Source: Octopus sinensis
Lineage: Eukaryota
Assembly: GCF_006345805.1 (NCBI RefSeq)
Contig: NW_021832106.1
Location: 1-58,146 of the forward strand
Direction: 5' to 3'
DNA length: 58,146 nt
Under the pieces are notes generated by a model that was not told the DNA's origin, made no database searches, and worked only from the letters and a program-made list of their open reading frames with translations. Shown here piece after piece: positions 3,810-53,949 of this stretch. Position 1 is the stretch's first letter. Each line of letters begins with the position of its first letter. A program made the translations under genes and the position numbers.

Positions 3810-4330
3810 GAAGGCACGCTGTCACAAACGGGGAATATAGATAAGAAACCTTAATTTTAATATCTGGGTAGAATCAAACGTCACCGAGAATAGGAAAATG
3901 TTGAACAGAATTTGGTAGAATTAACTAATGTGTATTGTAGCAGACGTCATTGATTAGCTTATTACTTATAATTTAATGGCCGTATGGCCATATGGATAGT
4001 AATCCATAAACCCTGCTTTCATACTACTGTAAAGAAAGTCAGGGAACGAAACAAATGTGCAGACAAGATATAAATGCAACCACTGAAGGTCGCTTGGGGC
4101 ATAAAATGGAATAGCCTCTTTTTTAACACCAAAAAATTAAATTTGCATTGAAGATCATTTTTCAAAATTCAGATCAATTATAATAAGTAGGGCGATTTTT
4201 TAAGCTAAAAAATAACAAATTAAAGCAATAAATTTTTTGTTACAAATACAAATTACAGAATTTTCTAAATTTTCTGGTAGAAAATTTTGGTTGCATCTTA
4301 GAAAACTTTTTATCTCAGAGAAACATCTTT
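3810..4330 (+). repeat. Family M copy with a LINE-derived head
   Basis: Core motifs are shared with the other M copies; 3815-3912 matches the reverse complement of about 5530-5630. Confidence 0.7.
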
Positions 4331-12550: not shown

Positions 12551-15505
12551 CAGCCACGGCGAGATTTGAGTAGAAATTTTCAACTTCTTCAGGACATTTT
12601 ATTGATATATAGCCATTGTCGGTGCATATACGTTGACAATTGTCATAAGTTTTTTTCTCAGCATTAGTTGTAAGATTGACACCCTGTCATTGATTCTCCA
12701 GGATTTGTGAATTGAATTTGCATAGCGTTTATTGATTGCAAATCCATGTCCATAATGTCTACATTCCGGTTTTAGTAGTATAATGCTATATGATCCAATA
12801 ATCTCATCGAAATCCTTGTTCAACTTAGTTTCTTGAAGACAAGCTACTGAAACTCCATAATGGGTTAGATCCTTAGTCAATTGTGTTCTTCGTAGCTCTC
12901 CAGGGTGTGTATTATACATATGTGCAAAAGAGGGACGTCACCACCTCGACCAAAATCACGATGACTATGGAAGGAGGATGTTTGATAAAAAGAGATGGCC
13001 GACAAAATTGCTACATACTTCGAGTCTTTCTTCAGAAATGACGATGAACACATATCTCAGTTTGTTGGAGATCCCCGATGTTTAACTGTTCCAATTACTA
13101 TCACTGAGATGCAAACTGCTTTGCGAAAATTGAAAAATGGTAGGAGTCCGGGCATTGATGGTATTAATGGAGAACTTTAAAATACTGACCAAACTCACTT
13201 GCTCATCAGTTATGCGACATACTAAACGGCATATTTACGACACATACCGACGTTCTAGTTGGACAAGGAGTACAGAAACCAAGGAAACCAGTTGGACCGG
13301 TAGAAAATCTCCGACCTATAATTCTCTTAACATCTCTACAAAAATTACTGTCGTTGATTGTCCTTGATAGAATATCCCCTATCGTGGACAAATTATTGTC
13401 TGTGGGACAATGTGGGTTCAGAAGAGAGAGGTCTGCGACGGATATTGTATGGACACACAGATGGATGTGTGCCATGACACAGAGGTTCAGGAAGGCGGTT
13501 CACGTACTGGGGATAGATCTATCAGGTCGTTTGACACTCTTTGCAGGGGAAAGCTTATTCAGCTATTGGAAACATTTTTGGATGAGGAAAGTTTGAGAAT
13601 GATACGTGTCCTAGTTGCTAATACTGATCTGGAAGTGTGGGTTGGCTCGGAGCACTCTCGTAAATTAAAAACACATATTGCCACTCCACAAGGTGACTCT
13701 TTATCTCCGATCTTATTCGTCATCTATCTGGAAGCTGCTCTTCATGATCTGAAAACTAAAATTGGCCCAACCACCATCATGGAATTAATATATGCGGACG
13801 ACATAGATTTTGTTTCAGAAGAAATGAATGATATCAGAATTGCACTTGACTACGCTCCTGAAGTATTTAGAAAGTGGTTTTTGAAAATGAACGAACAAAA
13901 GACTGAGTTCATTACAGTCAAGCGAGAAAGTAAAGTTACTGACGAGATATGGAAGAGATCAAGAAAAGTCGGGTCACTGCTTGGTGACTGGAAAGATGTC
14001 AATCGAAGAAAGATACTGTCAACATTAGCACTGAAGAGGCTTAAATCGACAAGCTATACCCATCTCTCAAATCCTGTAAAAGTACGTTTGTACAATGCTT
14101 TTATCCTGCCCATTTTACTATACAACTCAGGAACATGGGGGACTGAATCGGAACTGTATATAAAATCTCAATGCTTTTCAGAAAAAACAACTCAGGTCAT
14201 TATTGAAAATACACTATCCAATAAAGATCAAGAACCAAGACTTATACTCCGTTTTCAAAACAGAACAATTAGACGCAACTATCACTAAGAGTCGATGGGG
14301 ACTCTTTGGCCACATACTACGGATGGATTCCTAAGTTCCTTCCAATGACATCATGGAAACATACTTTCAATGCTCTGGGATTTCTTGAGGTAGGCCACGG
14401 ACAACACTACCACTAATTTTAAATAACGACCTTAAGCATGTCGGATTGCTACTAGAAAATACAGACGATCTAGACCAGTTGTTCTTAAGAATTTTGAGCC
14501 AGGGGCCGCAAAAATCAAATTTTTTATTTATAGGGGCCGCACATTTTTGTCAACTTAATGAAGATAAGATATTTGTTATTTCAGGTTGAACTAAAGAAAA
14601 TACATATGATTTTTGTTTTACTGTGTACATGCAATTTAGAGTTGCGTCCTATCGCCGCACATTCGTTATATCAATGAATGAAAGAATTTATAAACTAATT
14701 TGTCATATTTTCAAAATCTGGTACTTAGATGTCGAAATCCGCAACATCTGATTTAGATGGATATCCGTTAGTTCATTGCGGTATTATTTCCTAATTTTAG
14801 TATCGTTACTTAGAGGTAACTTGTGTGCAATATCGAAAACAGCGGGCGAACAACATTCCGATGCAAATATTTCGATTGCCGTTTTATATAATTCGCCATC
14901 AGAATAAGGCTTCATATTTTCAGCCAATAGGTAACTAATTTTGTATGATGCCAGGTTAATATTAGACGAATATGTCCCACTTTTGAAAGTGGATGATCGG
15001 TTTAAATAATCTTCTTTCATTTGTTTTAGTTTTTTCGTCCGAGAAACACCAGTGAATTTGTCATAAAGAATAGAGTGGGAGCGGTAGTGCCGTTCGATTG
15101 TATACGTTTTTAAAGTTACAATAATAGAATTGCATATTAGGCAAAAACCTTTCCATTGACCTCAAGAATAAAATATTTTTCTTCCCAGATGAGTTTAAAA
15201 ATCCTATTTTCCTTGGAAATTTTTCGAAAACGTTTAGAATTCGACATCACAACAACAAATAAAAAAACGTGACAAAAAATAAAATATTTATAGAAACATA
15301 AGCCCCTCAATTAAATCCTAGGGGCCGCAAATTAAATCCTAGGGGCCGCACTTGAGAACTACTGAATTAAGCAGTCTACGAAAAATCGCAATCTCAAGAA
15401 GAGCGTGAAAGTGTCTAACAGACAAAATCTTACGGGATGTGACACAGGCGACGAGAAGATTGTAACTTTCTTTCTTGTTGATGCGGATGTGCAATTAATA
15501 ATAAT
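12551..15505 (+). mobile_element. RTE-clade LINE with an inverted 5' APE segment (12551-12920 on -), interrupted by a hAT element
   Basis: APE motifs (VACLQETK, NVYAPT) on -. RT on + (LKNGRSPGIDGI, QCGFR, SFDT, PQGDSLSP, YADD, LYNSGTW). The RTE-type end LRKIAISRRA resumes at 15365. Confidence 0.85.
14476..15364 (-). mobile_element. Internally deleted Charlie/SPIN-like hAT transposon
   Basis: TIRs CAGTTGTTCTTAAG / CTTGAGAACTACTG and transposase fragment ASYKISYLLAENMKPYSDGE...LSNDT. The left flank ATCTAGAC fits the Charlie-type target; the right TSD copy is absent. Confidence 0.8.
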
Positions 15506-16133: not shown

Positions 16134-17329
16134 ATGCTTAATTTACTCTTCTGTCAATTAATAGTCTTATTAAAATTTTCAACAGCTAGCGAGTCCTCTG
16201 ATCATTCTGAAAATAATTTTTTCGTAATTAATACGTGGGATTTTCCAGTAGCAAACGAAGAAGGTATTATTTAAATAATTCAAGACAGCTTATTTTATTC
16301 TAAAAAACGGGGGGACAGCACTCGATGCAGTAGAACAAGCATGTATTCAGTGTGAAGAAATGAAATGTGACCTCTCGGTCGGAATGGGTGGACAGTGTGA
16401 CGAATCGGGAGAGTCGACATTGGACGCCATGATAATGGACGGGTAATCTATACCTTAATAGTATTCTAGAAATACTCACAATGTAGGAGCTGTTGGTGGA
16501 ATAAAAAGAATTAAAAAATCTATTTCTGTCGCTCGATTTGTTCTTGAGCGAACTACTCATTCACTTTTGGTTGGAGAATCTGGTTGTTATCTTTTTAAAT
16601 TTAATCAGCAACGTCATTTGCGATTTCGATGGGGTTTCAACCACAAGATCTACACACTAATAGTTCCATTTACATACATAAAAAATGGGAAGAAAATAAT
16701 TGTCAACCGAATGCTTGGAAAGTTCAATTTTATAAAAATTATTTCCACAGAATGTGTATCCTGATCCATCCAAATCATGTGGGCCATATAGAAAGGCTGA
16801 TAGGCTATCACATGATCATAAAAGCGAAAATATAGACTGGAAGATCTCTGGACATGATACAATCAGCATAGTGGCCATGGATAAGAATAAGCAAATATTT
16901 GGAGCTACGTCGACAAATGGATTTAATCATAAAATTCCGGGGTTGAAAGGAATTTTTTATTGCATAGACGAGTTGGAGATTCACCTTTGCCTGGCTGTGG
17001 AGTATACGTAGACAACGAAATCGGGGGAGCAGGTGCAACAGGAGATGGGGACATTATGATGCGATTTTCGCCGAGTTTTCTTGTGGTCGAATTAATGGCT
17101 ACTGGAAACACGCCTAAAGATGCCTGTGAAATAGCCATCAAGAGAATTGCTAGATATTATCCAAGTTTTAATGGTGCCCTCTATGCAGTAACAAATGCTG
17201 GTGTTCATGGTTTATATATTTTTTATTTTAAAGTGAATAGGTGCTGCCTGTAGTGGATTTGATGGAAAATTTACATATTGGTTTAGTGACAAGAATTCTA
17301 AGGAAAAATATGAAGTTAAATGCATTTAG
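16134..17329 (+). CDS. AGA: N(4)-(beta-N-acetylglucosaminyl)-L-asparaginase (aspartylglucosaminidase); 7 exons, introns 25-31 nt
   Basis: The spliced frame is open: signal peptide, [34 protein letters not shown], autoproteolytic [30 protein letters not shown], ending VKCI*. Confidence 0.95.
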
Positions 17330-21490: not shown

Positions 21491-21629
21491 TTTCATTAAA
21501 AAAAATTAAAAAAAAATTATTTAAGCTAAAAAATACAAAATTTAACCAAAAAATAACTTTATCTTAATAATAAAATGGTATGGTGTGTGTCTGTCTGTCT
21601 GTCTGTGTGTGCACACCAACTTCAAATTG

Positions 21630-23065
21630 GCAATACGATGTCCTCGACTTACATGATGAGGTCCTTAAAACCTTCCCCCCAAAAAAATTAAAAAAAATTT
21701 TTCTTTCTGCATTTTGGTTAAAATGAACAACTACAATGTCCTCGACTTACATGATGAAGTCCTTAAAACCTTCCCCCCCAAACAAATTAAAAAAAATTTT
21801 CTGCATTTTGGTTAAAATGAACAACTACAATGTCCTCGACTTACATGATGAAGTCCTTAAAACCTTCCCCCCCAAAAAAATTAAAAAAAAATTTTCTGCA
21901 TTTGGTTAAATGAACAACTACAATGTCCTCGACTTACATGATGAAGTCCTTACCTTCCTTCCCCCCAAACAAATTAAAAAAAAATTTTCTGCATTTTGGT
22001 TAAAATGAACAACTACAATGTCCTCGACTTACATGATGAAGTCCTTAAAACCTTCCCCCCAAAAAAAAATTAAAAAAAAATTTCTGCATTTTGGTCAAAA
22101 TGAACAACTACAATGTCCTCGACTTACATGATGAAGTCCTTAAAACCTTCCCCTCAAAAAAAATTAAAAAAAATTTTCTGCATTTTGGTTAAAATGAACA
22201 ACTACAATGTCCTCAACTTACATGATGAAGTCCTTAAAACCTTCCCCCCCAAACAAATTAAAAAAAAATTTTCTGCATTTTGGTTAAAATGAACAACTAC
22301 AATGTCCTCGACTTACATGATGAAGTCCTTAAAACCTTCCCCCCAAAAAAAATTAAAAAAAATTTTCTGCATTTTGGTCAAAATGAACAACTACAATGTC
22401 CTCGACTTACATGATGAAGTCCTTAAAACCTTCCCCTCAAAAAAAATTAAAAAAAAATTTTCTGCATTTTGGTTAAAATGAACAACTACAATGTCCTCGA
22501 CTTACATGATGAAGTCCTTAAAACCTTCCCCCCCAAACAAATTAAAAAAAATTTTCTGCATTTTGGTTAAAATGAACAACTACAATGTCCTCGACTTACA
22601 TGATGAAGTCCTTAAAACCTTCCCCCCAAAAAAAATTAAAAAAAAATTTTCTGCATTTTGGTTAAAATGAACAACTACAATGTCCTCGACTTACATGATG
22701 AAGTCCTTAAAACCTTCCCCTCAAAAAAAATTAAAAAAAATTTTCTGCATTTTGGTTAAAATGAACAACTACAATGTCCTCAACTTACATGATGAAGTCC
22801 TTAAAACCTTCCCCCCCAAAAAAAATTAAAAAAAAATTTTCTGCATTTTGGTTAAAATGAACAACTACAATGTCCTCAACTTACATGATGAAGTCCTTAA
22901 AACCTTCCCCCCAAAAAAAATTAAAAAAAAATTTTCTGCATTTTGGTTAAAATGAACAACTACAATGTCCTCGACTTACATGATGAAGTCCTTAAAACCT
23001 TTCCCCCAAAAAATCAAAAAATTATTTTCTGCATTTTGATTAAAATGAACAACGCGAATGTCCTC
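21630..23065 (+). repeat. 94-95 bp tandem array (about 15 units plus a variant terminal unit)
   Basis: Unit aaaatgaacaactacaatgtcctcgacttacatgatgaagtccttaaaaccttcc(c)n(a)ntt(a)nttttctgcattttggtt. Confidence 0.95.
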
Positions 23066-23269
23066 GACATTCATGATGAGGTCCATTAAAACCTTCAAGG
23101 CAAAAATCTCACGTATTAAGAATATCCTTGATGAAAACGACAGCGAGAATATTAACAATGATGAACTCCCAATTATTCGCGATAAAGAAATTCAATTCAT
23201 CCTATGTTTTTCTCTTTAAAATTAAATGCATATATCATTATCGACCATGAATCAAAATTAAAGCTATTA

Positions 23270-26200
23270 TGTGACATGGTTTGCGCGATACCTATGGGCC
23301 GCGTGATACCTGACGCGACCTTGAAATGTGCAATTATGACATTGATGGGATTAAATTATAAATCTTTTAATTAGACCGCGACTCATTCTTATCATTTAAT
23401 AATTTACTAAATTAGCTAAAGACTCTCTCATTTTGACAAAAAATTATATTTGTAAGAATTTAATTATCAGAAATTAATTTTTTGGTGGGAAACCTAAATT
23501 TCTTGAGTTATTTCTAGCGTGCAAGTATGTTTTGCAGCAATGTCCTCGTACAAAGGTTATGTAAAGAATAGTTTGGAATATCAAATTTTAAAAGATGTTT
23601 TACAGGATAAATTTCCTGAACATCTTACAAAGCAAAAAAAATATAGACTAGTTAAGAAAATTGAAAATTTTACTGTAATTAATGAAAGGTATCATACAAA
23701 TTGTAAATGTATAGATTGTATCTTAAATGTGCGAATTCAGATCACAAGCTAGTGATTTGTCTGGACAATGAACCCGAAATGGAGATCGTTGCTAAAAGTT
23801 TGCATGACTTCTTGCATGGAGGAGTTAACAAAATTGAATATGAATGTCGACAACGATATTTCACAGTTAAAATGAGATTATTCGAAAAGTCATTCGAAAC
23901 TGTGAAATTTGTAAATTTGCGCGACCCTTAAAAGTTTTAACTTTTTTAAATCCTAGATTGGAGATATAAATAACCATGTCTTTGCATCTTGCCCAAATGA
24001 AAGATTTCAGATATATCTTATAGATCTGAAAAGTTTTTCTACTATAAATAAAAATTTTAAATGGATTTTAACGGTCATCTTAATAATAAAATGGTATGGT
24101 GTGTGTCTGTCTGTGTGTCTGTCTGTCTGTCTGTCTGTCTGTGTGTGCACACCAACTTCAAATTGGCAATACGATGTCCTCGACTTACATGATGAGGTCC
24201 TTAAAACCTTCCCCCCAAAAAAATAAAAAAAAAATTTTCTGCATTTTGGTTAAAATGAACAACTACAATGTCCTCGACTTACATGATGAAGTCCTTAAAA
24301 CCTTCCCCCCCAAAAAAAATTAAAAAAAAATTTTCTGCATTTTGGTTAAAATGAACAACTACAATGTCCTCGACTTACATGATGAAGTCCTTAAAACCTT
24401 CCCCCCAAAAAAATTAAAAAAAAATTTTCTGCATTTTGTTAAAATGAACAACTACAATGTCCTCGACTTACATGATGAAGTCCTTAAAACCTTCCCCCCC
24501 AAAAAAATTAAAAAAAAATTTTCTGCATTTTGTTAAAATGAACAACTACAATGTCCTCGACTTACATGATGAAGTCCTTAAAACCTTCCCCCCCAAAAAA
24601 ATTAAAAAAAAATTTTCTGCATTTTGGTTAAAATGAACAACTACAATGTCCTCGACTTACATGATGAAGTCCTTAAAACCTTCCCCCCCAAAAAAATTAA
24701 AAAAAAATTTTCTGCATTTTGGTTAAAATGAACAACTACAATGTCCTCGACTTACATGATGAAGTCCTTAAAACCTTCCCCCCAAAAAAATAAAAAAAAA
24801 TTTTCTGCATTTTGGTTAAAATGAACAACTACAATGTCCTCGACTTACATGATGAAGTCCTTAAAACCTTCCCCCCCAAAAAAAATTAAAAAAAAATTTT
24901 CTGCATTTTGGTTAAAATGAACAACTACAATGTCCTCGACTTACATGATGAAGTCCTTAAAACCTTCCCTCCCAAAAAAAATTAAAAAAAAATTTTCTGC
25001 ATTTTGGTTAAAATGAACAACTACAATGTCCTCGACTTACATGATGAAGTCCTTAAAACCTTCCCCCCAAAAAATCAAAAAATTATTTTCTGCATTTTGA
25101 TTAAAATGAACAACGCGAATGTCCTCGACATTCATGATGAGGTCCATTAAAACCTTCAAGGCAAAAATCTCACGTATTAAGAATATCCTTGATGAAAACG
25201 ACAGCGAGAATATTAACAATGATGAACTCCCAATTATTCGCGATAAAGAAATTCAATTCATCCTATGTTTTTCTCTTTAAAATTAAATGCATATATCATT
25301 ATCGACCATGAATCAAAATTAAAGCTATTATCATATTTGACTTTGACAGAATGTGCAATCACAGATTGCACGACTTTGAATAGAGTGTGCAATTAACAGA
25401 TTTTGAAAAACCACTTTGATAGTTGAAACCACATTAGCACAATCATTAACACATTTACCACCAATTGACGCACGACCTTGAATAGAGTGTGCAATTAACA
25501 GATTTTGAAAAACACTTTGATAGTTGAAACCACATTAGCACAACCATTAACACAATTTACCACCAATTGACAGCGCAATCAGAAGAATTTGCGTAAAAAT
25601 ATTAACTATTTACTTGAGTTTTTCGTAAAGATAGAATTTATTTTCGGTATGCCTCTTTTCCTAAACTTTTTTATTATTCAAAAATAATTTTTTAAATAGA
25701 TAACCGAAGGAGGAAAAACGAAGCTGAAGAAAAAACGGTCAGCTTAATAAGGTAATTAATTAAATCTTTTTTGTGTGTCGCTTTCTTGCCTGCCGCATCT
25801 CCCCCTGCCCCATTTCCGCCAGTAAAACAAAAAAATAAAAAAAGAAAAAAAGGAAATTACAAAGGAAAAATGAAAAAATTAAATATAAAAAAAATAGACC
25901 ACAAAAAATGAAAAAAAAAGTTTGCAATGACAATAAACAAGGCCCAGGGACAGTCATTAAAGGTAGTTGGGTTATTTTTAGAGAGTGAGTGCTTTTCACA
26001 TGGACAGCTGTATGTGGGATGCTCGAGGGTAGGCAGAAGAGAAAATTTATTCATATATGCCAAGGAAGGACGGACGACAAACATCGTTTATCAACAGGCG
26101 ATAGAATAGGGTTACATTAAACCAGGTAGTTTTATACATCTACATAAACTTATAGTTGTTTGATGAAACAGGCCCTCCGCAGGAGCTAGGTCGCGGTGAG

Positions 26201-27086
26201 CGAAGCGAGCTGCCGAGCTAGTTGACGTATATAGCAGGTTAGTTTTTTTAACAATTTTTATAGATTTGCATTTGCGAGGCCGCTCTACACTAAGTCCTCA
26301 AATGAAGTTTGTGAAAACCTTATTTTTCTTAAATGGTCCGTGTCAATTTCTTCAGTCCGATAATGGGACTGAATTCAAGAATCGTGAAATGACCAATCTA
26401 TGTGAGGAATTCAATATCAAACGAATTCACGGAAGGCCAAACAATCCCCGCTCACAAGGGATTGTCGAACGCTTCAACCAGTCAATTACAAGAAAAATGG
26501 CAAAAATGATCGACAATGATAATAAAAAGTGGCTGGAAAAATTAGAAAATGCAGTGTACAGTTATAACATTTCTGTCCACTCATCTTCTAATGAGAGCCC
26601 TTTTGAAAGATACCGGGGAATAAGTGGAATAAATACAATATTTTATGGTTGTAATTATAAAATTATTCCTTAGATAATTCAAGTAATGATTTGTTGAGTC
26701 CTGATCAAGTCGATGATGCAAACAATTGTCCGAGTCCAATTGAAAATTCATGTAATTTGAATTTCTATATGTAGATGATTGTAATTATTCGTTTACAAGT
26801 CCGAAAAGATTGCGACTGAATAAGTTTGAATCTCCATATTATCCATCTGCAGAAATTATCAGTATTTTATCAAACAATCGCGTTGAGGTAGTTTAAACAT
26901 TCAAATTTAATAGATAAAAAATTCGATGAGCGAAATTTCGATTGTGCCAATGTCCAGACTTAAAAAATAATTAACAAGTTATTATTCTTTGAAGTTTAAT
27001 ATTAATTACAATATTGACATTAAGTTAAGCTGCAAGGTCACGTCAGGTATCGCGCGGCCCATAGGTATCACGCAAACCATGTCACA
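23270..27086 (+). mobile_element. Ginger-like DNA transposon (Gypsy-type integrase, TIRs), disrupted by Helitron B
   Basis: About 54-bp imperfect TIRs TGTGACATGGTTTGCG.., with 5-bp TSD TATTA at 23265-23269 and 27087-27091. Spliced ORF from 23540: HHCC (HDFLHGG..CEIC), RFQI.LID, ILTVIDVYSRF, LQSDNGTEF, SQGIVERFN, YN...H...SPF. Introns at 23689-23714, 23934-23956 and 26238-26263. Confidence 0.85.
24078..26221 (+). mobile_element. Helitron copy B (about 10 array units), full length
   Basis: TC...CTAG inserted at acggtca|ttgacg (A|T, no TSD), inside the integrase TVID codons. Confidence 0.95.
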
Positions 27087-27277
27087 TATTATCATATTTG
27101 ACTTTGACAGAATGTGCAATCACAGATTGCACGACTTTGAATAGAGTGTGCAATTAACAGATTTTGAAAAACCACTTTGATAGTTGAAACCACATTAGCA
27201 CAATCATTAACACAATTTACCACCAATTGACGCACGACCTTGAATAGAGTGTGCAATTAACAGATTTTTGAAAAACA

Positions 27278-27520
27278 AGGAGCTCTCTGAACGGTATCTG
27301 TTCACTCCCATCGCCGTCGAGACTTCCGGCGTCATCGGCGAAAAGTCTCTTTCCTTTCTAAAAAAGCTTGGCCGCATGATCTCCCATAAACGGGGAGACC
27401 CACGCGAGTCCAAGTGGCTTTTCGAAAGGATTTCCTTGGCCATAGTACGTGGAAACTGTGTTTCCATTTACGATGCCGGGAATTTAGTTAGTTAATAACT
27501 ATTTGTTAATTACATATAAT
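27278..27520 (+). mobile_element. CRE-like RLE stub inserted in Helitron A
   Basis: YLFTPIAVETSGVIGEKSLSFLKKLG..SKWLFERISLAIVRGN; the empty site gaaaaaca|ctttgatag is seen in copy B. Confidence 0.9.
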
Positions 27521-27614
27521 CTTTGATAGTTGAAACCACATTAGCACAACCATTAACACAATTTACCACCAATTGACAGCGCAATCAGAAGAATTTGCGT
27601 AAAAATATTAACTA

Positions 27615-29877
27615 CTAGCTCGGCAGCTCGCTTCGCTCACCGCGACCTAGCTCCTGCGGAGGGCCTGTTTCATCAAACAACTATAAGTTTATGTAGATGT
27701 ATAAAACTACCTGGTTTAATGTAACCCTATTCTATCGCCTGTTGATAAACGATGTTTGTCGTCCGTCCTTCCTTGGCATATATGAATAAATTTTCTCTTC
27801 TGCCTACCCTCGAGCATCCCACATACAGCTGTCCATGTGAAAAGCACTCACTCTCTAAAAATAACCCAACTACCTTTAATGACTGTCCCTGGGCCTTGTT
27901 TATTGTCATTGCAAACTTTTTTTTTCATTTTTTGTGGTTTATTTTTTTTATATTTAATTTTTTCATTTTTCCTTTGTAATTTCCTTTTTTTTCTTTTTTT
28001 ATTTTTTTGTTTTTTACTGGCGGAAATGGGGCAGGGGGAGATGCGGCAGGCGGAAATTCGGCAGGCAAGAAAGCGACACACAAAAAAGCGACACACAAAA
28101 AAGATTTAATTAATTACCTTATTAAGCTGACCGTTTTTTCTTCAGCTTCGTTTTTCCTCCTTCGGTTATCTATTAAAAAATTATTTTTGAATAATAAAAA
28201 AGTTTAGGAAAAGAGGCATACCGAAAATAAATTCTATCTTTACGAAAAACTCAAGTAAATAGTTAATATTTTTACGCAAATTCTTCTGATTGCGCTGTCA
28301 ATTGGTGGTAAATTGTGTTAATGGTTGTGCTAATGTGGTTTCAACTATCAAAGTGTTTTTCAAAATCTGTTAATTGCACACTCTATTCAAGGTCGTGCGT
28401 CAATTGGTGGTAAATTGTGTTAATGATTGTGCTAATGTGGTTTCAACTATCAAAGTGGTTTTTCAAAATCTGTTAATTGCACACTCTATTCAAAGTCGTG
28501 CAATCTGTGATTGCACATTCTGTCAAAGTCAAATATGATAATAGCTTTAATTTTGATTCATGGTCGATAATGATATATGCATTTAATTTTAAAGAGAAAA
28601 ACATAGGATGAATTGAATTTCTTTATCGCGAATAATTGGGAGTTCATCATTGTTAATATTCTCGCTGTCGTTTTCATCAAGGATATTCTTAATACGTGAG
28701 ATTTTTGCCTTGAAGGTTTTAATGGACCTCATCATGAATGTCGAGGACATTCGCGTTGTTAATTTTAATCAAAATGCAGAAAATAATTTTTTGATTTTTT
28801 GGGGGAAAGGTTTTAAGGACTTCATCATGTAAGTCGAGGACATTGTAGTTGTTCATTTTAACCAAAATGCAGAAAATTTTTTTTTAATTTTTTTTGGGGG
28901 GGAAGGTTTTAAGGACTTCATCATGTAAGTCGAGGACATTGTAGTTGTTCATTTTAACCAAAATGCAGAAAATTTTTTTTTAATTTTTTTTGGGGGGAAG
29001 GTTTTAAGGACTTCATCATGTAAGTCGAGGACATTGTAGTTGTTCATTTTAACAAAATGCAGAAAATTTTTTTTTAATTTTTTTGGGGGGGAAGGTTTTA
29101 AGGACTTCATCATGTAAGTCGAGGACATTGTAGTTGTTCATTTTAACCAAAATGCAGAAAATTTTTTTTTAATTTTTTTTGGGGGGGAGGTTTTAAGGAC
29201 TTCATCATGTAAGTCGAGGACATTGTAGTTGTTCATTTTAACCAAAATGCAGAAAATTTTTTTTTAATTTTTTTTGGGGGGAAGGTTTTAAGGACTTCAT
29301 CATGTAAGTCGAGGACATTGTAGTTGTTCATTTTAACCAAAATGCAGAAAATTTTTTTTTAATTTTTTTTGGGGGGAAGGTTTTAAGGACTTCATCATGT
29401 AAGTCGAGGACATTGTAGTTGTTCATTTTAACCAAAATGCAGAAAATTTTTTTTTAATTTTTTTTGGGGGGAAGGTTTTAAGGACTTCATCATGTAAGTC
29501 GAGGACATTGTAGTTGTTCATTTTAACCAAAATGCAGAAAATTTTTTTTTAATTTTTTTTGGGGGGGAAGGTTTTAAGGACTTCATCATGTAAGTCGAGG
29601 ACATTGTAGTTGTTCATTTTAACCAAAATGCAGAAAATTTTTTTTAATTTTTTTTGGGGGGAAGGTTTTAAGGACTTCATCATGTAAGTCGAGGACATTG
29701 TAGTTGTTCATTTTAACCAAAATGCAGAAAATTTTTTTTTAATTTGTTTGGGGGGGAAGGTTTTAAGGACTTCATCATGTAAGTCGAGGATATCGTATTG
29801 CCAATTTGAAGTTGGTGTGCACACACAGACAGACAGACAGACAGACAGACACACACCATACCATTTTATTATTAAGA
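27615..29877 (-). mobile_element. Helitron copy C (about 11 array units), full length, inserted in copy A
   Basis: CTAG at 27615-27618 and 5' end at 29877; empty site aatattaacta|tttacttgag as in copy B. Confidence 0.95.
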
Positions 29878-30619
29878 TTTACTTGAGTTTTTCGTAAAGA
29901 TAGAATTTATTTTCGGTATGCCTCTTTCCTAAACTTTTTTATTATTCAAAAATAATTTTTTAAATAGATAACCGAAGGAGGAAAAACGAAGCTGAAGAAA
30001 AACGGTCAGCTTAATAAGGTAATTAATTAAATCTTTTTTGTGTGTCGCTTTTTTGTGTGTCGCTTTCTTGCCTGCCGCATTTCCGCCTGCCGCATCTCCC
30101 CCTGCCCCATTTCCGCCAGTAAAAAACAAAAAAAGAAAAAAAAGGAAATTACAAAGGAAAAATGAAAAAATTAAATATAAAAAAAAATAAACCACAAAAA
30201 ATGAAAAAAAAAGTGTGCAATGACAATAAACAAGGCCCAGGGACAGTCATTAAAGGTAGTTGGGTTATTTTTAGAGAGTGAGTGCTTTTCACATGGACAG
30301 CTGTATGTGGGATGCTCGAGGGTAGGCAGAAGAGAAAATTTATTCATATATGCCAAGGAAGGACGGACGACAAACATCGTTTATCAACAGGCGATAGAAT
30401 AGGGTTACATTAAACCAGGTAGTTTTATACATCTACATAAACTTATAGTTGTTTGATGAAACAGGCCCTCCGCAGGAGCTAGGTCGCGGTGAGCGAAGCG
30501 AGCTGCCGAGCTAGTTAACCTATAAACTAAAAAAATTAACTTAAAAATTTAACTTAACTAAGCAATAAAAAACTAAAACTTTTTGTTACAAATTGAAAAA
30601 CTTGATAAAATTCTCAGGG

Positions 30620-31850
30620 AAGCTATACTGGATTTTTTCCAAAAATCTTCGGTCAGAAAATACATCATGTCAAATAGTAACAGAAAAACCAGGATAGACG
30701 AATCTTTGGGAAAACTTATAAAATGGAAGGGAAACCTTGAAAAAAGCTAAGACGATGCAGTGACCTCATAGATTTTATTCGTTTTCGCGATAAGATTTGT
30801 ATCGTGAAAACAGAGATAAATGATGTCGCAAAAAAACGTTCAGATCTTGGTTGGAAGAGTCAATGCTCGAAACTGAATAAGAAAAATCATCATTTTTGGA
30901 AGGTTTTCAACAGACTAAGTAATATGGAGAACAAAGGAGTAGAGATCCGACTAAAAAACTGAAGGAATAGTTATCCCGCTTGATGAAGTTCTTTCACATT
31001 TGCGAAAACAGCTGGCAAAAGTTCAAGAAATGAACCCGATAGACATGGTTCCGAAAGAAGTTACATGTGAGACACAGAGAAGTCTGCGAGCTAACTTGAG
31101 TTATACAGGACCACTGTGCAGAGATATAACGTTGGAAGAAACGTATGCCGCTATTATGAGCTGCAAGAACAATGCACCCAGCCATGACTACATTCCAATT
31201 ACTGTATTCAAACATGCCCCAATTATTCTCCTACGATACTTGACCGCACTATACAATGCAAGCTGGAGATTTGGATACGTACCGGACTCTTGGAAAAAGT
31301 CAATCGTACGTATGATTCCAAAGCCTGGAAAAATGAAGGACCATGCAGAGAACTATAGGCCGATAAGCCTAATATGCTCCGTCTCTAAAATTATGGAACG
31401 GATTGTCTTCACAAGACTTTCAAACTTTGTAGAGGAATCAGGTGCACTTGCAGCTGAGCAGTTGGGTTTCCGACAAAAAAGATCCTGCAGAGATTGTTTC
31501 GAAGAACTCGAGAAAGCCATCTCGCTTAGTCCTGCAAACAATATAGCGACTATTGCTATCTACCTCGATGTCTCAAAAGCTTTTGACAGCGTATGGCACC
31601 TGGGCCTCTTGGAAAGTATCGCCAAAATAAAACTCGAGTCTAGAACGATCAATTGGCTGAAAAGCTTCTATACATGAGGCGGTCATACATACGATGCGGA
31701 AACCGTTTGTCGAAATCTGTCAATCTCGAAAGAGGGGTACCTAAAGGCTCGGTCTAGAGCCCTATACTTGTTAATATTTACGTTGCTGATATTCCAAAAC
31801 CGAAAGATTCTACCAGTAATCTCATGATCTACTTGAAAAGACGAGACGAT
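30620..31850 (+). pseudogene. LINE RT fragment (Jockey/I-like)
   Basis: NNAPSHDYIP, WKKSIVRMIPKPGK, YRPISLI, EQLGFR, YLDVSKAFDSVWH and GVPKGS, with stops and frameshifts. Confidence 0.9.
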
Positions 31851-31854
31851 TGAA

Positions 31855-32190
31855 GAGAATTTGGTAGAATTGACTAATGATTGACAAATTAATTAAAATA
31901 TTGGAGCAGACTAAAACTTTCATTGATTAGCTTGTTTACTTATAATTTAAAGTAAATTACTTTTGGCCATATGGCCATATGGATAGGAATTTAAAAAACC
32001 TGCTTTCATTCTACTGTAAAATACTACAGACTAAGAAAGTCAGGTAATGAAACAAATCAAATAAATAAGGGTGTGTGTAAATGCAACCCTCAAGTGGTTG
32101 TATGGGGCATAAAAAGGAAACGCCTCTTTTTTAACACCAAAAAATTCAATTTGCATGGAAGTTCATTTTTAAACTTCAAATCAATTTAAT
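31855..32190 (+). repeat. Family M core copy
   Basis: tttggtagaattgactaatg..gcagactaaaac..ggccatatggatag..gtggttgtatggggcataaaaagg. Confidence 0.75.
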
Positions 32191-32480
32191 CGTGCCTCGT
32201 CGAACCGGTCGGACTTGATCGGGGAGACGGCAAAAGGCCTGACGGGATGACAATATTCCCGTACTTGTCGCGGAAGGCCCTCGTATGGGATGTTACCGTT
32301 GTGGATACCTTTTCAAAGTCGAGGATCCATTCTTCCGCCGCGAACCCTTGTTCGGCCGCAAACCACGCCGAAAAGATGAAGCTACAAAAATATTCTTCGC
32401 TCGCGGACCGCTAGCGCGTTACGCCAATCGCCCTGGAGACTGCTGGAGCCGCGGGAAATCCGCCCAAATAATAGACCCTA
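32191..32480 (+). mobile_element. CRE-like RLE stub
   Basis: CLVEPVGLDRGDGKRPDGMTIFPY..ALVWDVTVVDTF. Confidence 0.85.
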
Positions 32481-32689
32481 AATAAGATACATCTGGACTC
32501 AATCAAATCCATCCCTCAACGAATTTTTCATCAAGTTTGGGAAACTTGAGATTTGCTTTTTTAAGGCTAGATTGTGTATCTTTTTATCTTTGAGAAGAGA
32601 ATCTTTTTTCAAATGAATGTTGTTGATTGTTTTTCGAGAAATTTTTTTATTAAACAAAAAGGAAAAATCTTTCGGCCAAAAATTTAGGA

Positions 32690-33084
32690 CAGTGGTTCTC
32701 AAACTAGGGTAAGCAAAAAATGTATTTAATTTTCGGCACAATTAAATGAATTTTGGTGTAGAATGATATCAAAATGTCATAAAATTGGATTTTATATAAT
32801 CGAATTTTTGATTTTGTTTCCGACTACATATCTCTGCGAACAGAGATTTTCATCGTTGTTTAGTTTAAAATCAGTTCATCGTGCGAGGCTGAATGTTGTT
32901 CATGATATTCGTGTGACATTCGTCAATAAATCCAAAAGTCGATAGATTAGTTGTTGATAAACAACACCATTAATCTCATTATTAAATAATTTTTTTATTA
33001 ATTTTTGAAAAATCTATAAAGGATACGCAAAAAATTATTTAGATGGCAAGAGGTATGCAAGGCAAAAAAGTTTGAGAACCACTG
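32690..33084 (+). mobile_element. hAT MITE (Buster/Charlie-like), 395 bp
   Basis: TIRs CAGTGGTTCTCAAACT / AGTTTGAGAACCACTG; partial TSD ATTTAGGA/ATTTAGAG; dimerization remnant FPTTYLCEQRFS. Confidence 0.85.
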
Positions 33085-33092
33085 ATTTAGAG

Positions 33093-33215
33093 ATTGGTTT
33101 AATCATCTCGAGGAAGAGTCACGACAGTCGTAAAACGAGCTGGCTTTTTCAGCGGATATCGTTCGCGATATTACGTGGAAATTGCCTGTCCATCCGCTCG
33201 GCGACTCATCTAAAT
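33093..33215 (+). mobile_element. CRE-like RLE stub
   Basis: GLIISRKSHDSRKTSWLFQRISFAILRGNC. Confidence 0.75.
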
Positions 33216-33291
33216 TAGTTAACTTTTCTATTTTACTTGTTATTTTGCACTCTAAAAAAAACTGATTTAGGAGATTCACATACGTCATGAA

Positions 33292-35171
33292 TAGGGCAAT
33301 TTTTTTCAGGCACTTAAAATTTATTTTTAGGACCTTAAAAATAGGCATTTTAGGACTTTATTTTTAATTTTTAGGACTTTATTCTACATTTTTAGGCACA
33401 TTTTAATAAGGTATTAAATCAAAAAGTCGTAAAAAATTATTTGTTATAGTAAGGTATTAAATAATTTTTGACATTTTCCGCATTGAAACCTCTATCTTTA
33501 GTAATTAATTTTTTAAGCATAGAAAATGCTCTTTCAACGGTTGATGATGTACACTGACATTTTCTTATTAGTCCATATTCTTCAGGGGAGATATTACTTT
33601 TCTCCATTTCTATAATTGATTCTATGTCATTTTTGTGTAATTTTTTTGTATGTATTCATTTATTTCTGCATTATCAGACGGAAATTTTAACAAACAAAGA
33701 TCTGAATGTGCATCATTTATTGTATAACTTGTGGATTCCATTTTTTTCAATATTTGATTAAGTATCTGATAATTTTCATTTATTTCCATTAGACTTTTTC
33801 TTAAGGTTGGCGATTCAATTGCTTGTTTTACTTTTTTAACTAATATTCCGTCGTCTTTGAAATTCTCCACAATTTCAGCAATTGATACAAAATTATTTGC
33901 ATAATAGTATGCTGCTTGCAGCCAACTACCCCATCTAGTTATGATGACGTCGGGCGGATAACCAATTGTAGAAAACATTTTTTTTCTAGTTTTGTTTTTC
34001 ACTATTGATGTCTTTATAGTCGCAATAAGATTATCAACGTCCGAATAATACGCCTTTACTCTGAGACAGCAATTATGTAACAAATGTGCAACACATGTTA
34101 CATGGAACATCCTAGGATAAAGCATTTTCAATGTTTTTCCGGCTAAAAATAATTCAACAAACTACCCAAAATCATATACGGGGCTGCATCAGAAAGAAAA
34201 AGAAGAAAATTATTGCGTATAATCTCGAATTTTTTAATCTCTTCATCGATAATCTGAAGAATTGTGTTAGCAGTTACAGATTCATATAAAGGTTCACACG
34301 AAATTAAATAGGTCTTCTCTGGATAAGCGATATTCCCAATGAGAACAACTACAAACTTCTGTCCATTTACGTCACCCTCGTCAACAACCATAAAAATCTT
34401 TTGAGATCTAAAAATTAATCATTTGTTAACCTTAGATCACTTTTATACTTGGATAATTTTTGTTCACTGATTGCAGGAATACAATTGCGACAGGCTGACT
34501 GGGAAGGAAGCGAAATATTCAATTTTTCAAACAATCCCTTTAAGCTTGGATTATTGAGCTTATGAAGAGGAATGTTTGCTTCAGAAAAGGCTTTGGCAAC
34601 TTCCATCGGCATACTCTGAAAGTCTTCCGTTTCGGTTTGACCGTTGAATAGGGAATCTAAGGATTGTTGGAATCCTTCATTGTTATCTAAAAAAAATAAT
34701 TTTAAATTACTCAAAAGCTTTAGATGTTTTGTAGATTGTCTATGCTGATCAATATAATATTTTTTTGATGCATTGACGTAGATCATACATATTTTACAAT
34801 ATAGACTGCCTTTAATCACTGTGAATTCTTTTACGTAAGTTTCATAGGCTTTTAGAGCTTTAGACTTTATTGTAGAACGTACACGTGGCATTTGAACACA
34901 AAAAAGTAATTTATAGCGTGCCTAATTTGTTATTTTTAAAATATTTTTTTGTAACATTTAAAAATAATTTATTTTAAAAATTTTTAAGACCTTAAAAAAA
35001 TTTTTAGGACCTTAAAAAAATTTTTTAGGACCTTAACAATTTTTTAAGCATTTAAGGCATTTATAACTCGTTGTAGATAAATCTATTTTAATTAAATTAT
35101 AGCTTAAATTAATTATTTAAATAAATAGACCTTTTGGTGCAAAAAGGCATTTTAGGCAAAAAATTGCCCTA
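33292..35171 (-). mobile_element. Near-intact autonomous-type hAT transposon, 1880 bp
   Basis: TIR TAGGGCAATTTTTT, perfect 8-bp TSD GTCATGAA (33284-33291 and 35172-35179), and subterminal taggaccttaaaa repeats at both ends. Confidence 0.9.
33437..34891 (-). CDS. hAT transposase (CGGBP1/DUF659-like), about 460 aa after splicing; one frameshift in an A-run near 33645
   Basis: BED-like finger (LYCKIC..QH..STKH), VVDE, FLSDAAPYM, HVTCVAHLLHNC and STVERAFS. Introns at 34143-34165 and 34408-34430 (23 nt each) restore the frame; a probable third at 34687-34710 (24 nt). Confidence 0.85.
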
Positions 35172-35429
35172 GTCATGAACCTGTTTTAAAAAATTTATTG
35201 TTTATAAATTACCAAAAGTCATAAAAATTAAGACTAATCCATCTCTATTTTTTACATTGACAAAATGTTAGACAATTTTGCAACAATAGTAAATGGATCT
35301 CCGTATGGTTTTTCGAACCTTATTAATCTAGGCGAAGGATTGGTCCCAGAATGCTTTTGAATGCGAGTCCTTTAAGTAATTAAATTATAATACAATATCA
35401 TGCAAATGATCTGAATTATAAAAAACAGC

Positions 35430-46051: not shown

Positions 46052-47306
46052 ATGACAGTTTTCAATTCTTCAACCAACAAAAATTCAGTCACTGCACCTA
46101 ACCCTCCAAACGACACAGTATCTCATATGTCGTTTGGTCCAAACATGGCGACCTCTGTACTCTTGGCAGCCTCTTCATGGGAAGCATCAGTATATTCCTG
46201 AATAATTTCTAAATTTGTAGATTTCATGCTATGAAGTGACTTCTGACAGGAATGTAATTTACAAAGCAAAGAAAACAGACACTCAGCCAATCTTCCACAC
46301 ATGTTGGAGTCTCGTATTTCTTATATTAAAATATTTACTTTCCAGGACGGTAAACAAATATATTCAGCCTGTGGAGACAATTTTGCAAAGTTGTGGGACT
46401 TGCAGAGTGACCAGTACGTCAATGTAGCCAAGGTACTCATAATTTGTATATTTCTAGCACGATAAACCAGTTAGAAGCGTCCATTTCATAGACTCCCCAA
46501 ATTATAAATGTCTAATGACTGTGAGCTGGGACTGCTCCGTTAAGGTATTTAAAGTAATCATTTATTTCTAGTTTTGGGACTCACGTTCACAGACTCCAAT
46601 GAAGGTCCTCACATCGGAAGTGAAATACATAGCATCTGACGTTGTAAGTAATTGATAGGTTTTAAATTTGTTAATAGGTCTACCCGATGGCGTTGTTATT
46701 GAGAGCAGACAACAAAGTACAGTTGTGTGCACTGGACAACGAGCCCCGATTTCATAGACTGGACACGATAAATGACGTCAAATATACCTGTAGGACTGTG
46801 GCAGGCTATTTGAACGCCAATAAACTGCCTGATGGGTACGCAGTTGGGGGGTGTGATGGCCGAGTCCACGTCGTATATATCAATAATAGTGCCGATAATT
46901 ACATTTTTAAATGTCACCGACAAAATGCCCCTCAAACCAGGAATATTCCTCGCCAGAACGTTCACATGGTGCTTTGTGGGTGGATATATGGTAGATAAAC
47001 TCAATGGCCTTTCATCCGGTTCAAAAAACACTGCTTACGGCTGGAGGGGACGGATTTTACTATGGCTGGAACATTCGTAGTAAAGCAAAGATTTGTACTT
47101 CACGTGATTATTCTAATCCATTGACGGCTTGTTGCTTTAGTGGGGACGGAAATGTAATGGCAGTGGCCGTGGGGTATGACTGGTCAAAGGTGGTCATATT
47201 TACTTTATTTGATTAGGGATATAAGAATAATCTGTCTTCTATCAAACAGGAAATACACGTTAAGGCTACTGGCAATGACATGACCGGGTCGTCTAGGTTC
47301 GGTTGA
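46052..47306 (+). CDS. RAE1: mRNA export factor Rae1 (WD40); 8 exons, introns about 25-34 nt
   Basis: PPNDTVSHMSF, AASSW, LWDL, HDKPV..SPNYKCLMTVSWDCSVKFWDSR, DGRV, FKCHR, INSMAFHP..TAGGDG and GYDWSKG. The last two motifs distinguish Rae1 from Bub3. Confidence 0.9.
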
Positions 47307-47560: not shown

Positions 47561-52026
<4,466 letters not shown>

Positions 52027-52874: not shown

Positions 52875-53949
52875 TGTCACATGGGTGATCAGACCCCTAT
52901 GGGCAACCTGGCCTTTACGTGTTTCCATGGCAACTACATAGCAAATATTTACTAAAAGGCCAACTAATATAAAGGCAAACGATACGAACTAATGATTGAA
53001 CTTTAAATTTTCGAGAAAATGATGTTTTATATTTGAACCATGCTTGCTTTAAAATAGTAAAATTATTTACAACATTAGCAAATTATAATGTGAATTATTT
53101 TTATTTTTGATAATATAAATTGCAACATTAGCAAATTATAATTTACATCAAATTTTTAGGCAAATTTGTAACAACTTTAACTCTAACCTTAACCCAAACC
53201 CTAACGTTGGCAAGTGACAACATAAATATTCAAAATCTAACCCTAACGTTGGCAAGTGACAACATAAATATTCAAAATCTAACCCTAACCTTAACCCAAA
53301 CCCTAACGTTGGCAAGTGACAACATAAATATTCAAAATCTAACCCTAACCTTAACCCAAACCCTAACGTTGGCAAGTGACAACATAAATATATTCAAAAT
53401 CTAACCCTAACCTTAACCCAAACCCTAACGTTGGCAAGTGACAACATAAATATATTCAAAATCTAACCCTAACCTTAACCCAAACCCTAACGTTGGCAAG
53501 TGACAACATAAATATTCAAAATCTAACCCTAACCCTAACGTAGCCCTAACTCGAAATTAAATGATGTTTCTGCTGACGATTCTTCAGGCATTTTTGACAA
53601 AAATTGGAAGCCTTTTTGGCCAACCGGTGTTTGCTTCGAGCATTCATATCCTCCGGGAATATCCCGATTAACGTTTCCTTAATTTGATTGTATTCGTTAA
53701 TATTTCTGACGTAACCCTTAAACCCAGACATCACAAAGTGTGAGTAACCACGCTGTTAAAATTAATATACTTTTGGGTAAGCCATTTTTAAAAGATAATT
53801 CAAATGTAATTTTTAATTAGAGTAATTGATTAATCTACACTCTTCCAAATATAAATTGCTATATTCAATATTTAATACCTTTTCTGTGGTTTCCATAGAA
53901 ACACGTAAAAGGACTGGCTGCCCATAGCGACCTAGTCGCCCATGTGACA
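52875..53949 (-). mobile_element. Ginger-like deletion derivative (1075 bp)
   Basis: About 60-bp imperfect TIRs TGTCACATGGG.., TSD TATTA at 52870-52874 and 53950-53954. ORF MSGFKGYVRNINEYNQIKETL..FPE..KHRL is homologous to MSSYKGYVKNSLEYQILKDVL..FPE..KYRL at 23540. Confidence 0.85.
53181..53548 (+). repeat. About 60-bp tandem repeat (6-7 units) rich in CCCTAA-type hexamers
   Basis: Unit ccctaaccttaacccaaaccctaacgttggcaagtgacaacataaatattcaaaatctaa, with one 42-bp short unit. Confidence 0.95.

Follow-up and report, generated by a model that had tools for sequence, protein, structure and literature searches.

Introns in transposase genes are known from the P, Ac and Tc elements, Ac being a member of the hAT superfamily. 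Production of the P element transposase depends on removal of one such intron, IVS3, by the host, and retention of IVS3 yields a truncated protein. Here we analyse two class II transposons, a hAT element and a Ginger2/TDD-like element, in a stretch of 58,146 nucleotides deposited under Octopus sinensis (contig NW_021832106.1, assembly GCF_006345805.1); the whole stretch is referred to as the window. The transposase gene of the hAT element and the integrase gene of the Ginger-like element are interrupted by eight GT-AG segments of 23 or 26 nt, which resemble the introns of host genes in the same window and are absent at the matching positions of the relatives compared.

Some Ginger1 transposase genes contain one to four canonical GT-AG introns (PMC2836005). 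Intron dynamics have been analysed for CACTA transposases (PMC4158355), and intron gain has been described in domesticated genes of transposon origin (PMC3369469). Very short introns are found in the host genes of myxobolid myxozoans and Dicyema japonicum, where the median length is 22-27 bp and the splice signals are reduced to GTa...AG, as verified with long cDNA reads (PMC13644364). The D. japonicum genome has 36.7% GC and 49% repeats (PMC6736024).

Short GT-AG segments in two transposase genes

The window consists of eukaryotic DNA rich in transposable elements (TEs), with a GC content of about 34-35%, and the standard genetic code reads through. Two host genes were used for comparison, aspartylglucosaminidase (AGA) and a RAE1-like WD40 gene. 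Their exons can be joined solely by excision of GT-AG segments of 25-34 nt, and therefore the host genome uses ultra-short introns. Taken together, the 21 introns and candidate introns of host genes in the window are 23-34 nt long (median 26 nt) with 76% A+T; 17 of them start with GTA or GTT and 15 end with TAG.

The eight TE segments follow the same pattern. Each starts with GTA or GTT, ends with TAG and is exactly 23 or 26 nt long, and their A+T content is 80%. Both length and composition match the host introns, from which these segments are indistinguishable, in agreement with the first-pass annotation, which had described them as host-style. After excision, seven of the eight junctions align with homologues without gaps. 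A retained segment leads to a stop within 2-21 codons, again in seven cases of eight, the exception being integrase intron 3 in the mutated copy. The hAT excisions yield KSDLR/SQKIF and DAAPYMIL/AGKTLK (the slash marks the junction), gap-free against 12 full-length homologues (27-45% identity, end-to-end alignment), and five of the six integrase junctions show no gap in the alignment with the nearest relatives. The first-pass annotation had named DAAPYMIL/AGKTLK and VYSR/FAF as examples of conserved motifs restored by excision; both are restored, as are KSDLR/SQKIF, INER/LYL and RPLK/IGD.

The number of introns had to be revised. Three integrase introns (26, 23 and 26 nt) had been proposed, and all three stand with gap-free junctions, but the gene contains six, introns 4, 5 and 6 being additions to the first-pass annotation. 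For the hAT gene two or three had been proposed. The two of 23 nt hold, whereas the third (probably 24 nt) is a single-base frameshift in an A5 run: the flanking coding stretches are in different frames, a 24-nt excision would keep the frame, and no GT-AG segment fits there. Correction of the single-base shift gives YTK(N)DIESII, which aligns without gaps to KKN-D in the homologues. Splicing leaves the hAT frame open over 404 codons, and the remaining two frames hold 34 and 42 stops.

The product of the GT and AG dinucleotide frequencies in the window is 0.0024. Each junction allows about 30-50 stop-free placements of an excision of the same length, and the chance of a GT-AG placement is about 0.1 per junction. 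The joint chance for the five junctions proposed initially is about 1e-5, and far lower if the restored conserved residues are also considered. These per-junction counts and the alignment with homologues replaced a window-wide scan of ORF-joining excisions (ORF, open reading frame), in which GT-AG was compared with ten control dinucleotide pairs. The scan was not discriminating: raw excision counts are uninformative because any dinucleotide pair can bridge adjacent ORFs.

One possibility is that the segments are random short insertions or other indels in decaying pseudogenes. Indeed, other lesions are present (three 1-nt frameshifts, a Helitron insertion, a D-to-Y substitution and a deletion), and one copy of each element was seen. 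However, the single-base frameshifts form a separate class of lesions, all three of them in homopolymer runs. All eight segments have uniform ends, one of two exact lengths and a host-like composition, and the chance estimate given above is about 1e-5 or lower. Moreover, the hAT copy is otherwise pristine, with perfect target-site duplications (TSDs), perfect terminal inverted repeats (TIRs) and the long open frame. In so recent and undamaged an insertion, it is not credible that two segments of 23 nt, each with exact splice ends, disabled the gene independently, and we consider this explanation very improbable.

Removal could also occur at the level of DNA, the segments being internal eliminated sequences of the ciliate type that are lost from somatic nuclei. 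DNA elimination is reported in dicyemids, and germ-versus-soma differences had been hinted at earlier for these genes. However, the boundaries are GT...AG and not TA...TA, the genetic code is standard, and the same kind of segments interrupts AGA and the RAE1-like gene, which are ordinary host genes. In animals with short introns such junctions have been confirmed on cDNA reads (PMC13644364). We consider elimination very improbable as well. A ciliate origin of the window was rejected on the same standard code and GT-AG ends.

We conclude from the sequence that the eight segments are putative spliceosomal introns of the U2-type, GT-AG class.

The TE introns all have lengths equal to 2 modulo 3 and end with TAG; the host lengths are distributed as 10:6:5 among remainders 2, 0 and 1. 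In this small sample, such uniformity has a chance probability of about 0.003. A comparison of the TE introns with other sequence in the window, as expected for intron transposition, gave no convincing matches; the other fuzzy matches, to hAT intron 1 and integrase intron 5 only, were short and had 4 edits each.

Retroelement ORFs in the window had been said to lack such introns. This agrees with a spot check of two reverse transcriptase (RT) regions of long interspersed nuclear elements (LINEs), at 12900-14288 and 31000-32300, which contain small frameshifts and in-frame stops only. One GT-AG candidate, at 13350-13370, lies within RT coding sequence and is spurious. Since the template for retrotransposition is RNA that has already been spliced, introns are not expected in these regions.

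Intron positions in homologues and the origin of the introns

Comparison of intron positions with homologues had been suggested as a check, and it was made for both genes. All 58 hAT homologues are uninterrupted at both intron positions. Genomic hAT loci are in a single frame at these positions in an aphid and in three ENA assemblies. One relative on an ENA contig is a single ORF of 491 codons, and the copies of Myzus persicae are single-exon at several loci. Two partial ORFs that start at query residue ~162 suggested that hAT intron 1 might be shared by some relatives; both extend upstream in the same frame in tblastn searches, and thus the intron is absent. In a neighbour-joining (NJ) tree the window hAT is nested among its homologues. 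The closest full-length relative of the integrase, from the microsporidian Dictyocoela muelleri (49% identity), is encoded by one uninterrupted ORF of 450 codons in genomic DNA. The integrase family is common to unrelated parasites, including this microsporidian genome, which may reflect horizontal transfer.

Since the relatives are uninterrupted and the hAT element is nested among them, gain in the lineages of the window is more parsimonious than repeated loss. The first-pass annotation had left two ways to reach host dimensions, gain and shrinkage; from the sequence comparison we favour the former, lineage-specific gain, over shrinkage of inherited introns.

If the introns had been inherited, they would have been longer originally and shortened by the deletion bias of the host, and the relatives would have lost theirs. 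The introns of Ginger1 genes mentioned above fit such a history, and so does the view that host introns in lineages of this type are conserved in position and shortened (PMC13644364). However, it would require several independent losses per intron, given the nested position of the hAT element, and it has to accommodate the uninterrupted state of every hAT homologue and the single-frame aphid, ENA and microsporidian loci. We consider shrinkage unlikely.

Several points weigh against lineage-specific gain and the intron assignment. Firstly, no protein match exceeded 57% identity, and the nearest relatives are 45-57% identical, which also speaks for shrinkage. Secondly, the protein collection was built largely from uninterrupted ORFs, and intron-bearing relatives are under-represented in it; this bias weakens the case for gain and again counts in favour of shrinkage. 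Thirdly, the analysis covers one copy per element; no further copies were found by exact look-up of an ORF of the window or in two metagenome scans, with an exon-intron-exon pattern and with the Helitron satellite. Finally, integrase intron 5 adjoins a deletion of ~35 amino acids in a poorly conserved region and has support from the frame alone.

The following explanation would account for these data. The host would be an animal whose own spliceosomal introns are about 23-34 nt long, with two resident class II transposons, hAT and Ginger2/TDD-like. Their transposase genes would carry ordinary U2-type GT-AG introns of the minimal host size, two in the hAT gene and six in the integrase gene, and a functional transposase would require prior removal of these segments by the host spliceosome. 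As relatives elsewhere are uninterrupted at the matching positions, the introns would have been added in these transposon lineages specifically, most likely after the families had settled in the lineage. Both the splicing of the segments and their gain, as opposed to inheritance, are inferred in this way, and we assign a probability of roughly 0.8 to the explanation as a whole.

A stronger claim is that all eight mini-introns were created de novo in the transposase genes after both families had colonised the lineage. We hold it tentatively, at slightly less than even odds. A pattern GTW...A-rich...TAG within 23-26 nt may be sufficient for recognition, which would make de novo birth plausible. 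If the claim is true, an animal with introns of ~25 nt still makes introns, and these are born at or near the minimal size. The start from zero introns, combined with dating by divergence of copies, would then provide a clean and datable record of intron birth, and the elements would serve as natural test constructs for minimal introns. Control of transposition by splicing, restriction of host range and a germ-versus-soma aspect are reasonable hypotheses only.

Anatomy of the elements and adjacent sequences

The attribution of both genes to DNA transposons, made in the first-pass annotation, is borne out by the ends of the elements; the coordinates are collected in the table. The hAT element is flanked by an 8-bp TSD, and its TIRs start with TAGGG, in accordance with the 5'-YARNG terminus. 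The transposase has 468 codons after two intron excisions and bridging of one frameshift, and both its ends resemble those of the homologues (N-terminal MPK..., C-terminal ...YN). Invariant positions of the alignment are D163, D227, E438, C251/H254 and R304-W305, and the C-terminal VERxFS region is conserved. The only Pfam match, to DUF659, does not reach the gathering score (E=2.3e-6). The family profile has a weak match to the Hermes transposase (2BW3, E~2e-3), and PF05699 is recorded for one homologue only, P0047. Given the perfect TSD and TIRs and the single 1-nt frameshift, this is a young insertion and nearly intact.

The N-terminal zinc finger of the hAT transposase (34891-34700, residues ~30-81) is nearer to the U1-C type than to BED in a profile search (E 1.3e-3). 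The element adjoins a small Charlie-like hAT deletion derivative at 32690-33084, whose 16-bp TIRs CAGTGGTTCTCAAACT are perfect and which still holds a remnant ORF for the hAT C-terminus. A copy of the TIR with one mismatch, TAGGGCGATTTTTT, lies at 4188-4201 and may mark one end of a non-autonomous relative.

The Ginger-like element has TIRs that begin with TGTGACATGG (TGTGA termini). They are near-identical over the initial ~54 bp and 79% complementary over 90 nt. Paralogous copies of the target site, AAAGCTATTATCATATTTGAC, are uninterrupted at four places, 7645, 25321, 28548(-) and 8965(-), and confirm the TSD TATTA. The integrase is the sole gene between the TIRs, and RT and RNase H are absent. 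It matches the Pfam domains rve (1.4e-12) and Integrase_H2C2 (4.7e-6), and profiles of the PFV and Ty3 integrases (PDB). The termini (TGTNR), the TIR length (~50-180 bp), the TSD of 4-5 bp in an AT-rich target and the gene content fit an assignment to Ginger2/TDD, made from sequence features. Ginger1 was rejected, as the TSD is TATTA and not CCGG/CCGT and Pfam detects no OTU or Ulp1 domain. GingerRoot was rejected as well, since its TSD is 6 bp and GC-rich (PMC6839031). Ginger2/TDD integrases are without the YPYY and GPY/F motifs of Ginger1 and Gypsy; in the window element, a degenerate form of the GPY/F module may be present in the C-terminal sequence KFESPYYPSAEII.

This copy is a dead relic, with a Helitron insertion, the D-to-Y substitution, two frameshifts and a deletion. 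In the region 26238-26327 of the dead integrase, retention of intron 3 (+26 nt) together with an extra T in the T5 run (+1) leaves 145 codons open; this may be coincidence or compensation. The three TIR mismatches (23270-23323 against 27033-27086) are all C/T at CpG sites. Such a pattern may indicate that TEs are subject to cytosine methylation in the host. In that case a myxozoan host would be less likely, as myxozoans are reported to lack the cytosine methylation pathway (PMC13644364).

The element nested in the integrase gene has the 5'-TC...CTRR-3' ends of Helitrons, inserted between A and T with no TSD (A/TCTTAAT...GAGCTAG/T). Its ends are found again in the window, 4 and 5 times. The family is abundant at 21562-30514, and further ends are located at 10907(-), 29877(-), 8551, 6209(-) and 27615(-). 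Its members have the 5' end TCTTAATAATAAAATGGTATGG and the 3' end ...GCGAGCTGCCGAGCTAG, a 95-bp tandem array and a remnant ORF for the C-terminus of a PIF1-like helicase. The Ginger-like element entered one Helitron copy, and a second Helitron later entered the Ginger-like element.

Downstream of the RAE1-like gene, a host kinase/coiled-coil gene (47700-51900, + strand) contains about eleven more candidate mini-introns of 23-30 nt, found by ORF bridging. An interstitial tandem array at 53197-53539 consists of 42- and 62-bp units around telomere-like AACCCT(AA) motifs.

Table. Positions of the two transposons, their predicted introns and the features used for comparison (window numbering except for the last line).
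Feature	Position	Strand	Remarks
hAT element, complete, DUF659-type transposase	33292..35171	-	1,880 bp
hAT TSD, left copy	33284..33291		GTCATGAA; identical 8-mer on either flank
hAT TSD, right copy	35172..35179		GTCATGAA
hAT TIR	33292..33305	+	TAGGGCAATTTTTT; 14/14 match, 0 mismatches; chance expectation 0.18 matches
hAT TIR, inverted copy	35158..35171	-	TAGGGCAATTTTTT
hAT transposase gene	33437..34891	-	ATG at 34891, stop 33439-33437
hAT intron 1	34408..34430	-	23 nt, GTTAACAAATGATTAATTTTTAG, phase 2; read-through: stop after 5 codons
hAT intron 2	34143..34165	-	23 nt, GTAGTTTGTTGAATTATTTTTAG, phase 1; read-through: stop after 7 codons
hAT A5 run, 1-nt frameshift	33630..33634	-	final 64 codons in another frame
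Ginger2/TDD-like element	23270..27086	+	~1.67 kb minus nested Helitron
Ginger-like TSD, left copy	23265..23269		TATTA
Ginger-like TSD, right copy	27087..27091		TATTA
Integrase pseudogene	23540..26970	+	H2C2 zinc finger, rve core, C-terminal domain; 378 codons by conceptual splicing
Integrase intron 1	23689..23714	+	26 nt, phase 2; INER/LYL gap-free
Integrase intron 2	23934..23956	+	23 nt, phase 0; RPLK/IGDINNH gap-free
Integrase intron 3	26238..26263	+	26 nt, phase 2; DVYSR/FAFARPL fits consensus SKFAFAxPL
Integrase intron 4	26648..26673	+	26 nt, phase 1; gap-free against homologue P0059
Integrase intron 5, probable	26752..26774	+	23 nt, phase 1; frame logic only
Integrase intron 6	26888..26913	+	26 nt, phase 0; NNRVE/IKNS gap-free; read-through: stop after 2 codons
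TAT (Tyr) codon for near-invariant first DDE-core Asp	24014..24016	+	FQIYLIDL vs FQIDLIDL
Integrase A-run, 1-nt frameshift	23869..23872	+	
Integrase T5 run, 1-nt frameshift	26323..26327	+	
Helitron inside integrase	24078..26221	+	between A24077 and T26222, within TVI/D codons
AGA gene	16240..17300	+	host comparator; 55-62% identity to animal AGA
AGA obligatory introns	16443-16469, 16583-16608, 16722-16750, 16942-16967		27, 26, 29, 26 nt
RAE1-like WD40 gene	46053..47250	+	host comparator
RAE1-like introns 1-3	46190-46220, 46314-46345, 46433-46457		31, 32, 25 nt
RAE1-like introns 4-6	46545-46571, 46644-46677, 46969-46994		27, 34, 26 nt
Dictyocoela muelleri element	L001:2783-4598 (GCA_016256075.1)		~1.8 kb; 213-bp TIRs (98%), TGTCG termini, 5-bp TSD TATTA

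Comparison with described systems

Transposase introns and animals with introns of ~25 nt are already known separately, and their combination is expected in principle. A literature search found no report of ultra-short introns in transposase genes. The combination is a new example and not a new kind; the added interest lies in eight near-minimal introns that look like lineage-specific additions. As all relatives are intronless, the elements of the window are clean candidates for lineage-specific intron gain. Segments of 23 nt with GT-AG ends, in genes whose expression was needed for the recent mobility of a family, would provide independent support for ultra-short introns in animals. If an element that needs a spliceosome adapted to mini-introns were transferred horizontally to an ordinary host, it would probably not function there.

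The candidate introns of the window share with those of D. japonicum and the myxobolids the lengths of 22-27 bp, the reduced splice signals and the A-rich stretch before AG, and the window resembles the D. japonicum genome in its TE content and low GC. GC, repeat content and intron size together suggest, as a guess, that the host is a dicyemid or a myxobolid; AGA, at 55-62% identity to all animals, gave an uninformative NJ tree. However, it is host genes that are described there, and transposase introns are mentioned in neither PMC13644364 nor PMC6736024.

The hAT element has the 8-bp TSD and short TAGGG TIRs of the superfamily and candidate D-D-E, CxxH and RW motifs, but differs in the DUF659-type transposase, the 23-nt introns, the U1-C-like zinc finger and the intronless state of its relatives. 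Similarly, the Ginger-like element has the stand-alone Gypsy-like integrase (H2C2 and DDE) between TIRs with TGTNR termini that is common to Ginger1, Ginger2 and TDD, and it shares with TDD-4/5 the 5-bp TSD in an AT-rich target (PMC2836005). Unlike other Ginger transposons, it would have six introns in a gene of 1.1 kb, each of 23 or 26 nt, whereas the closest relatives of its integrase are uninterrupted ORFs.

Dependence of transposase on host splicing would be analogous to the situation with IVS3 of the P element; the analogy extends neither to regulated nor to tissue-specific splicing. Introns of known intron-bearing transposases are generally of the size typical for the host. As in the studies of CACTA transposases and domesticated genes (PMC4158355, PMC3369469), transposase genes serve here as a system for intron gain and loss. 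However, the introns in those studies, of plants and mammals, were of normal size and the changes mostly losses, whereas here we observe apparent gains of near-minimal size in mobile copies.

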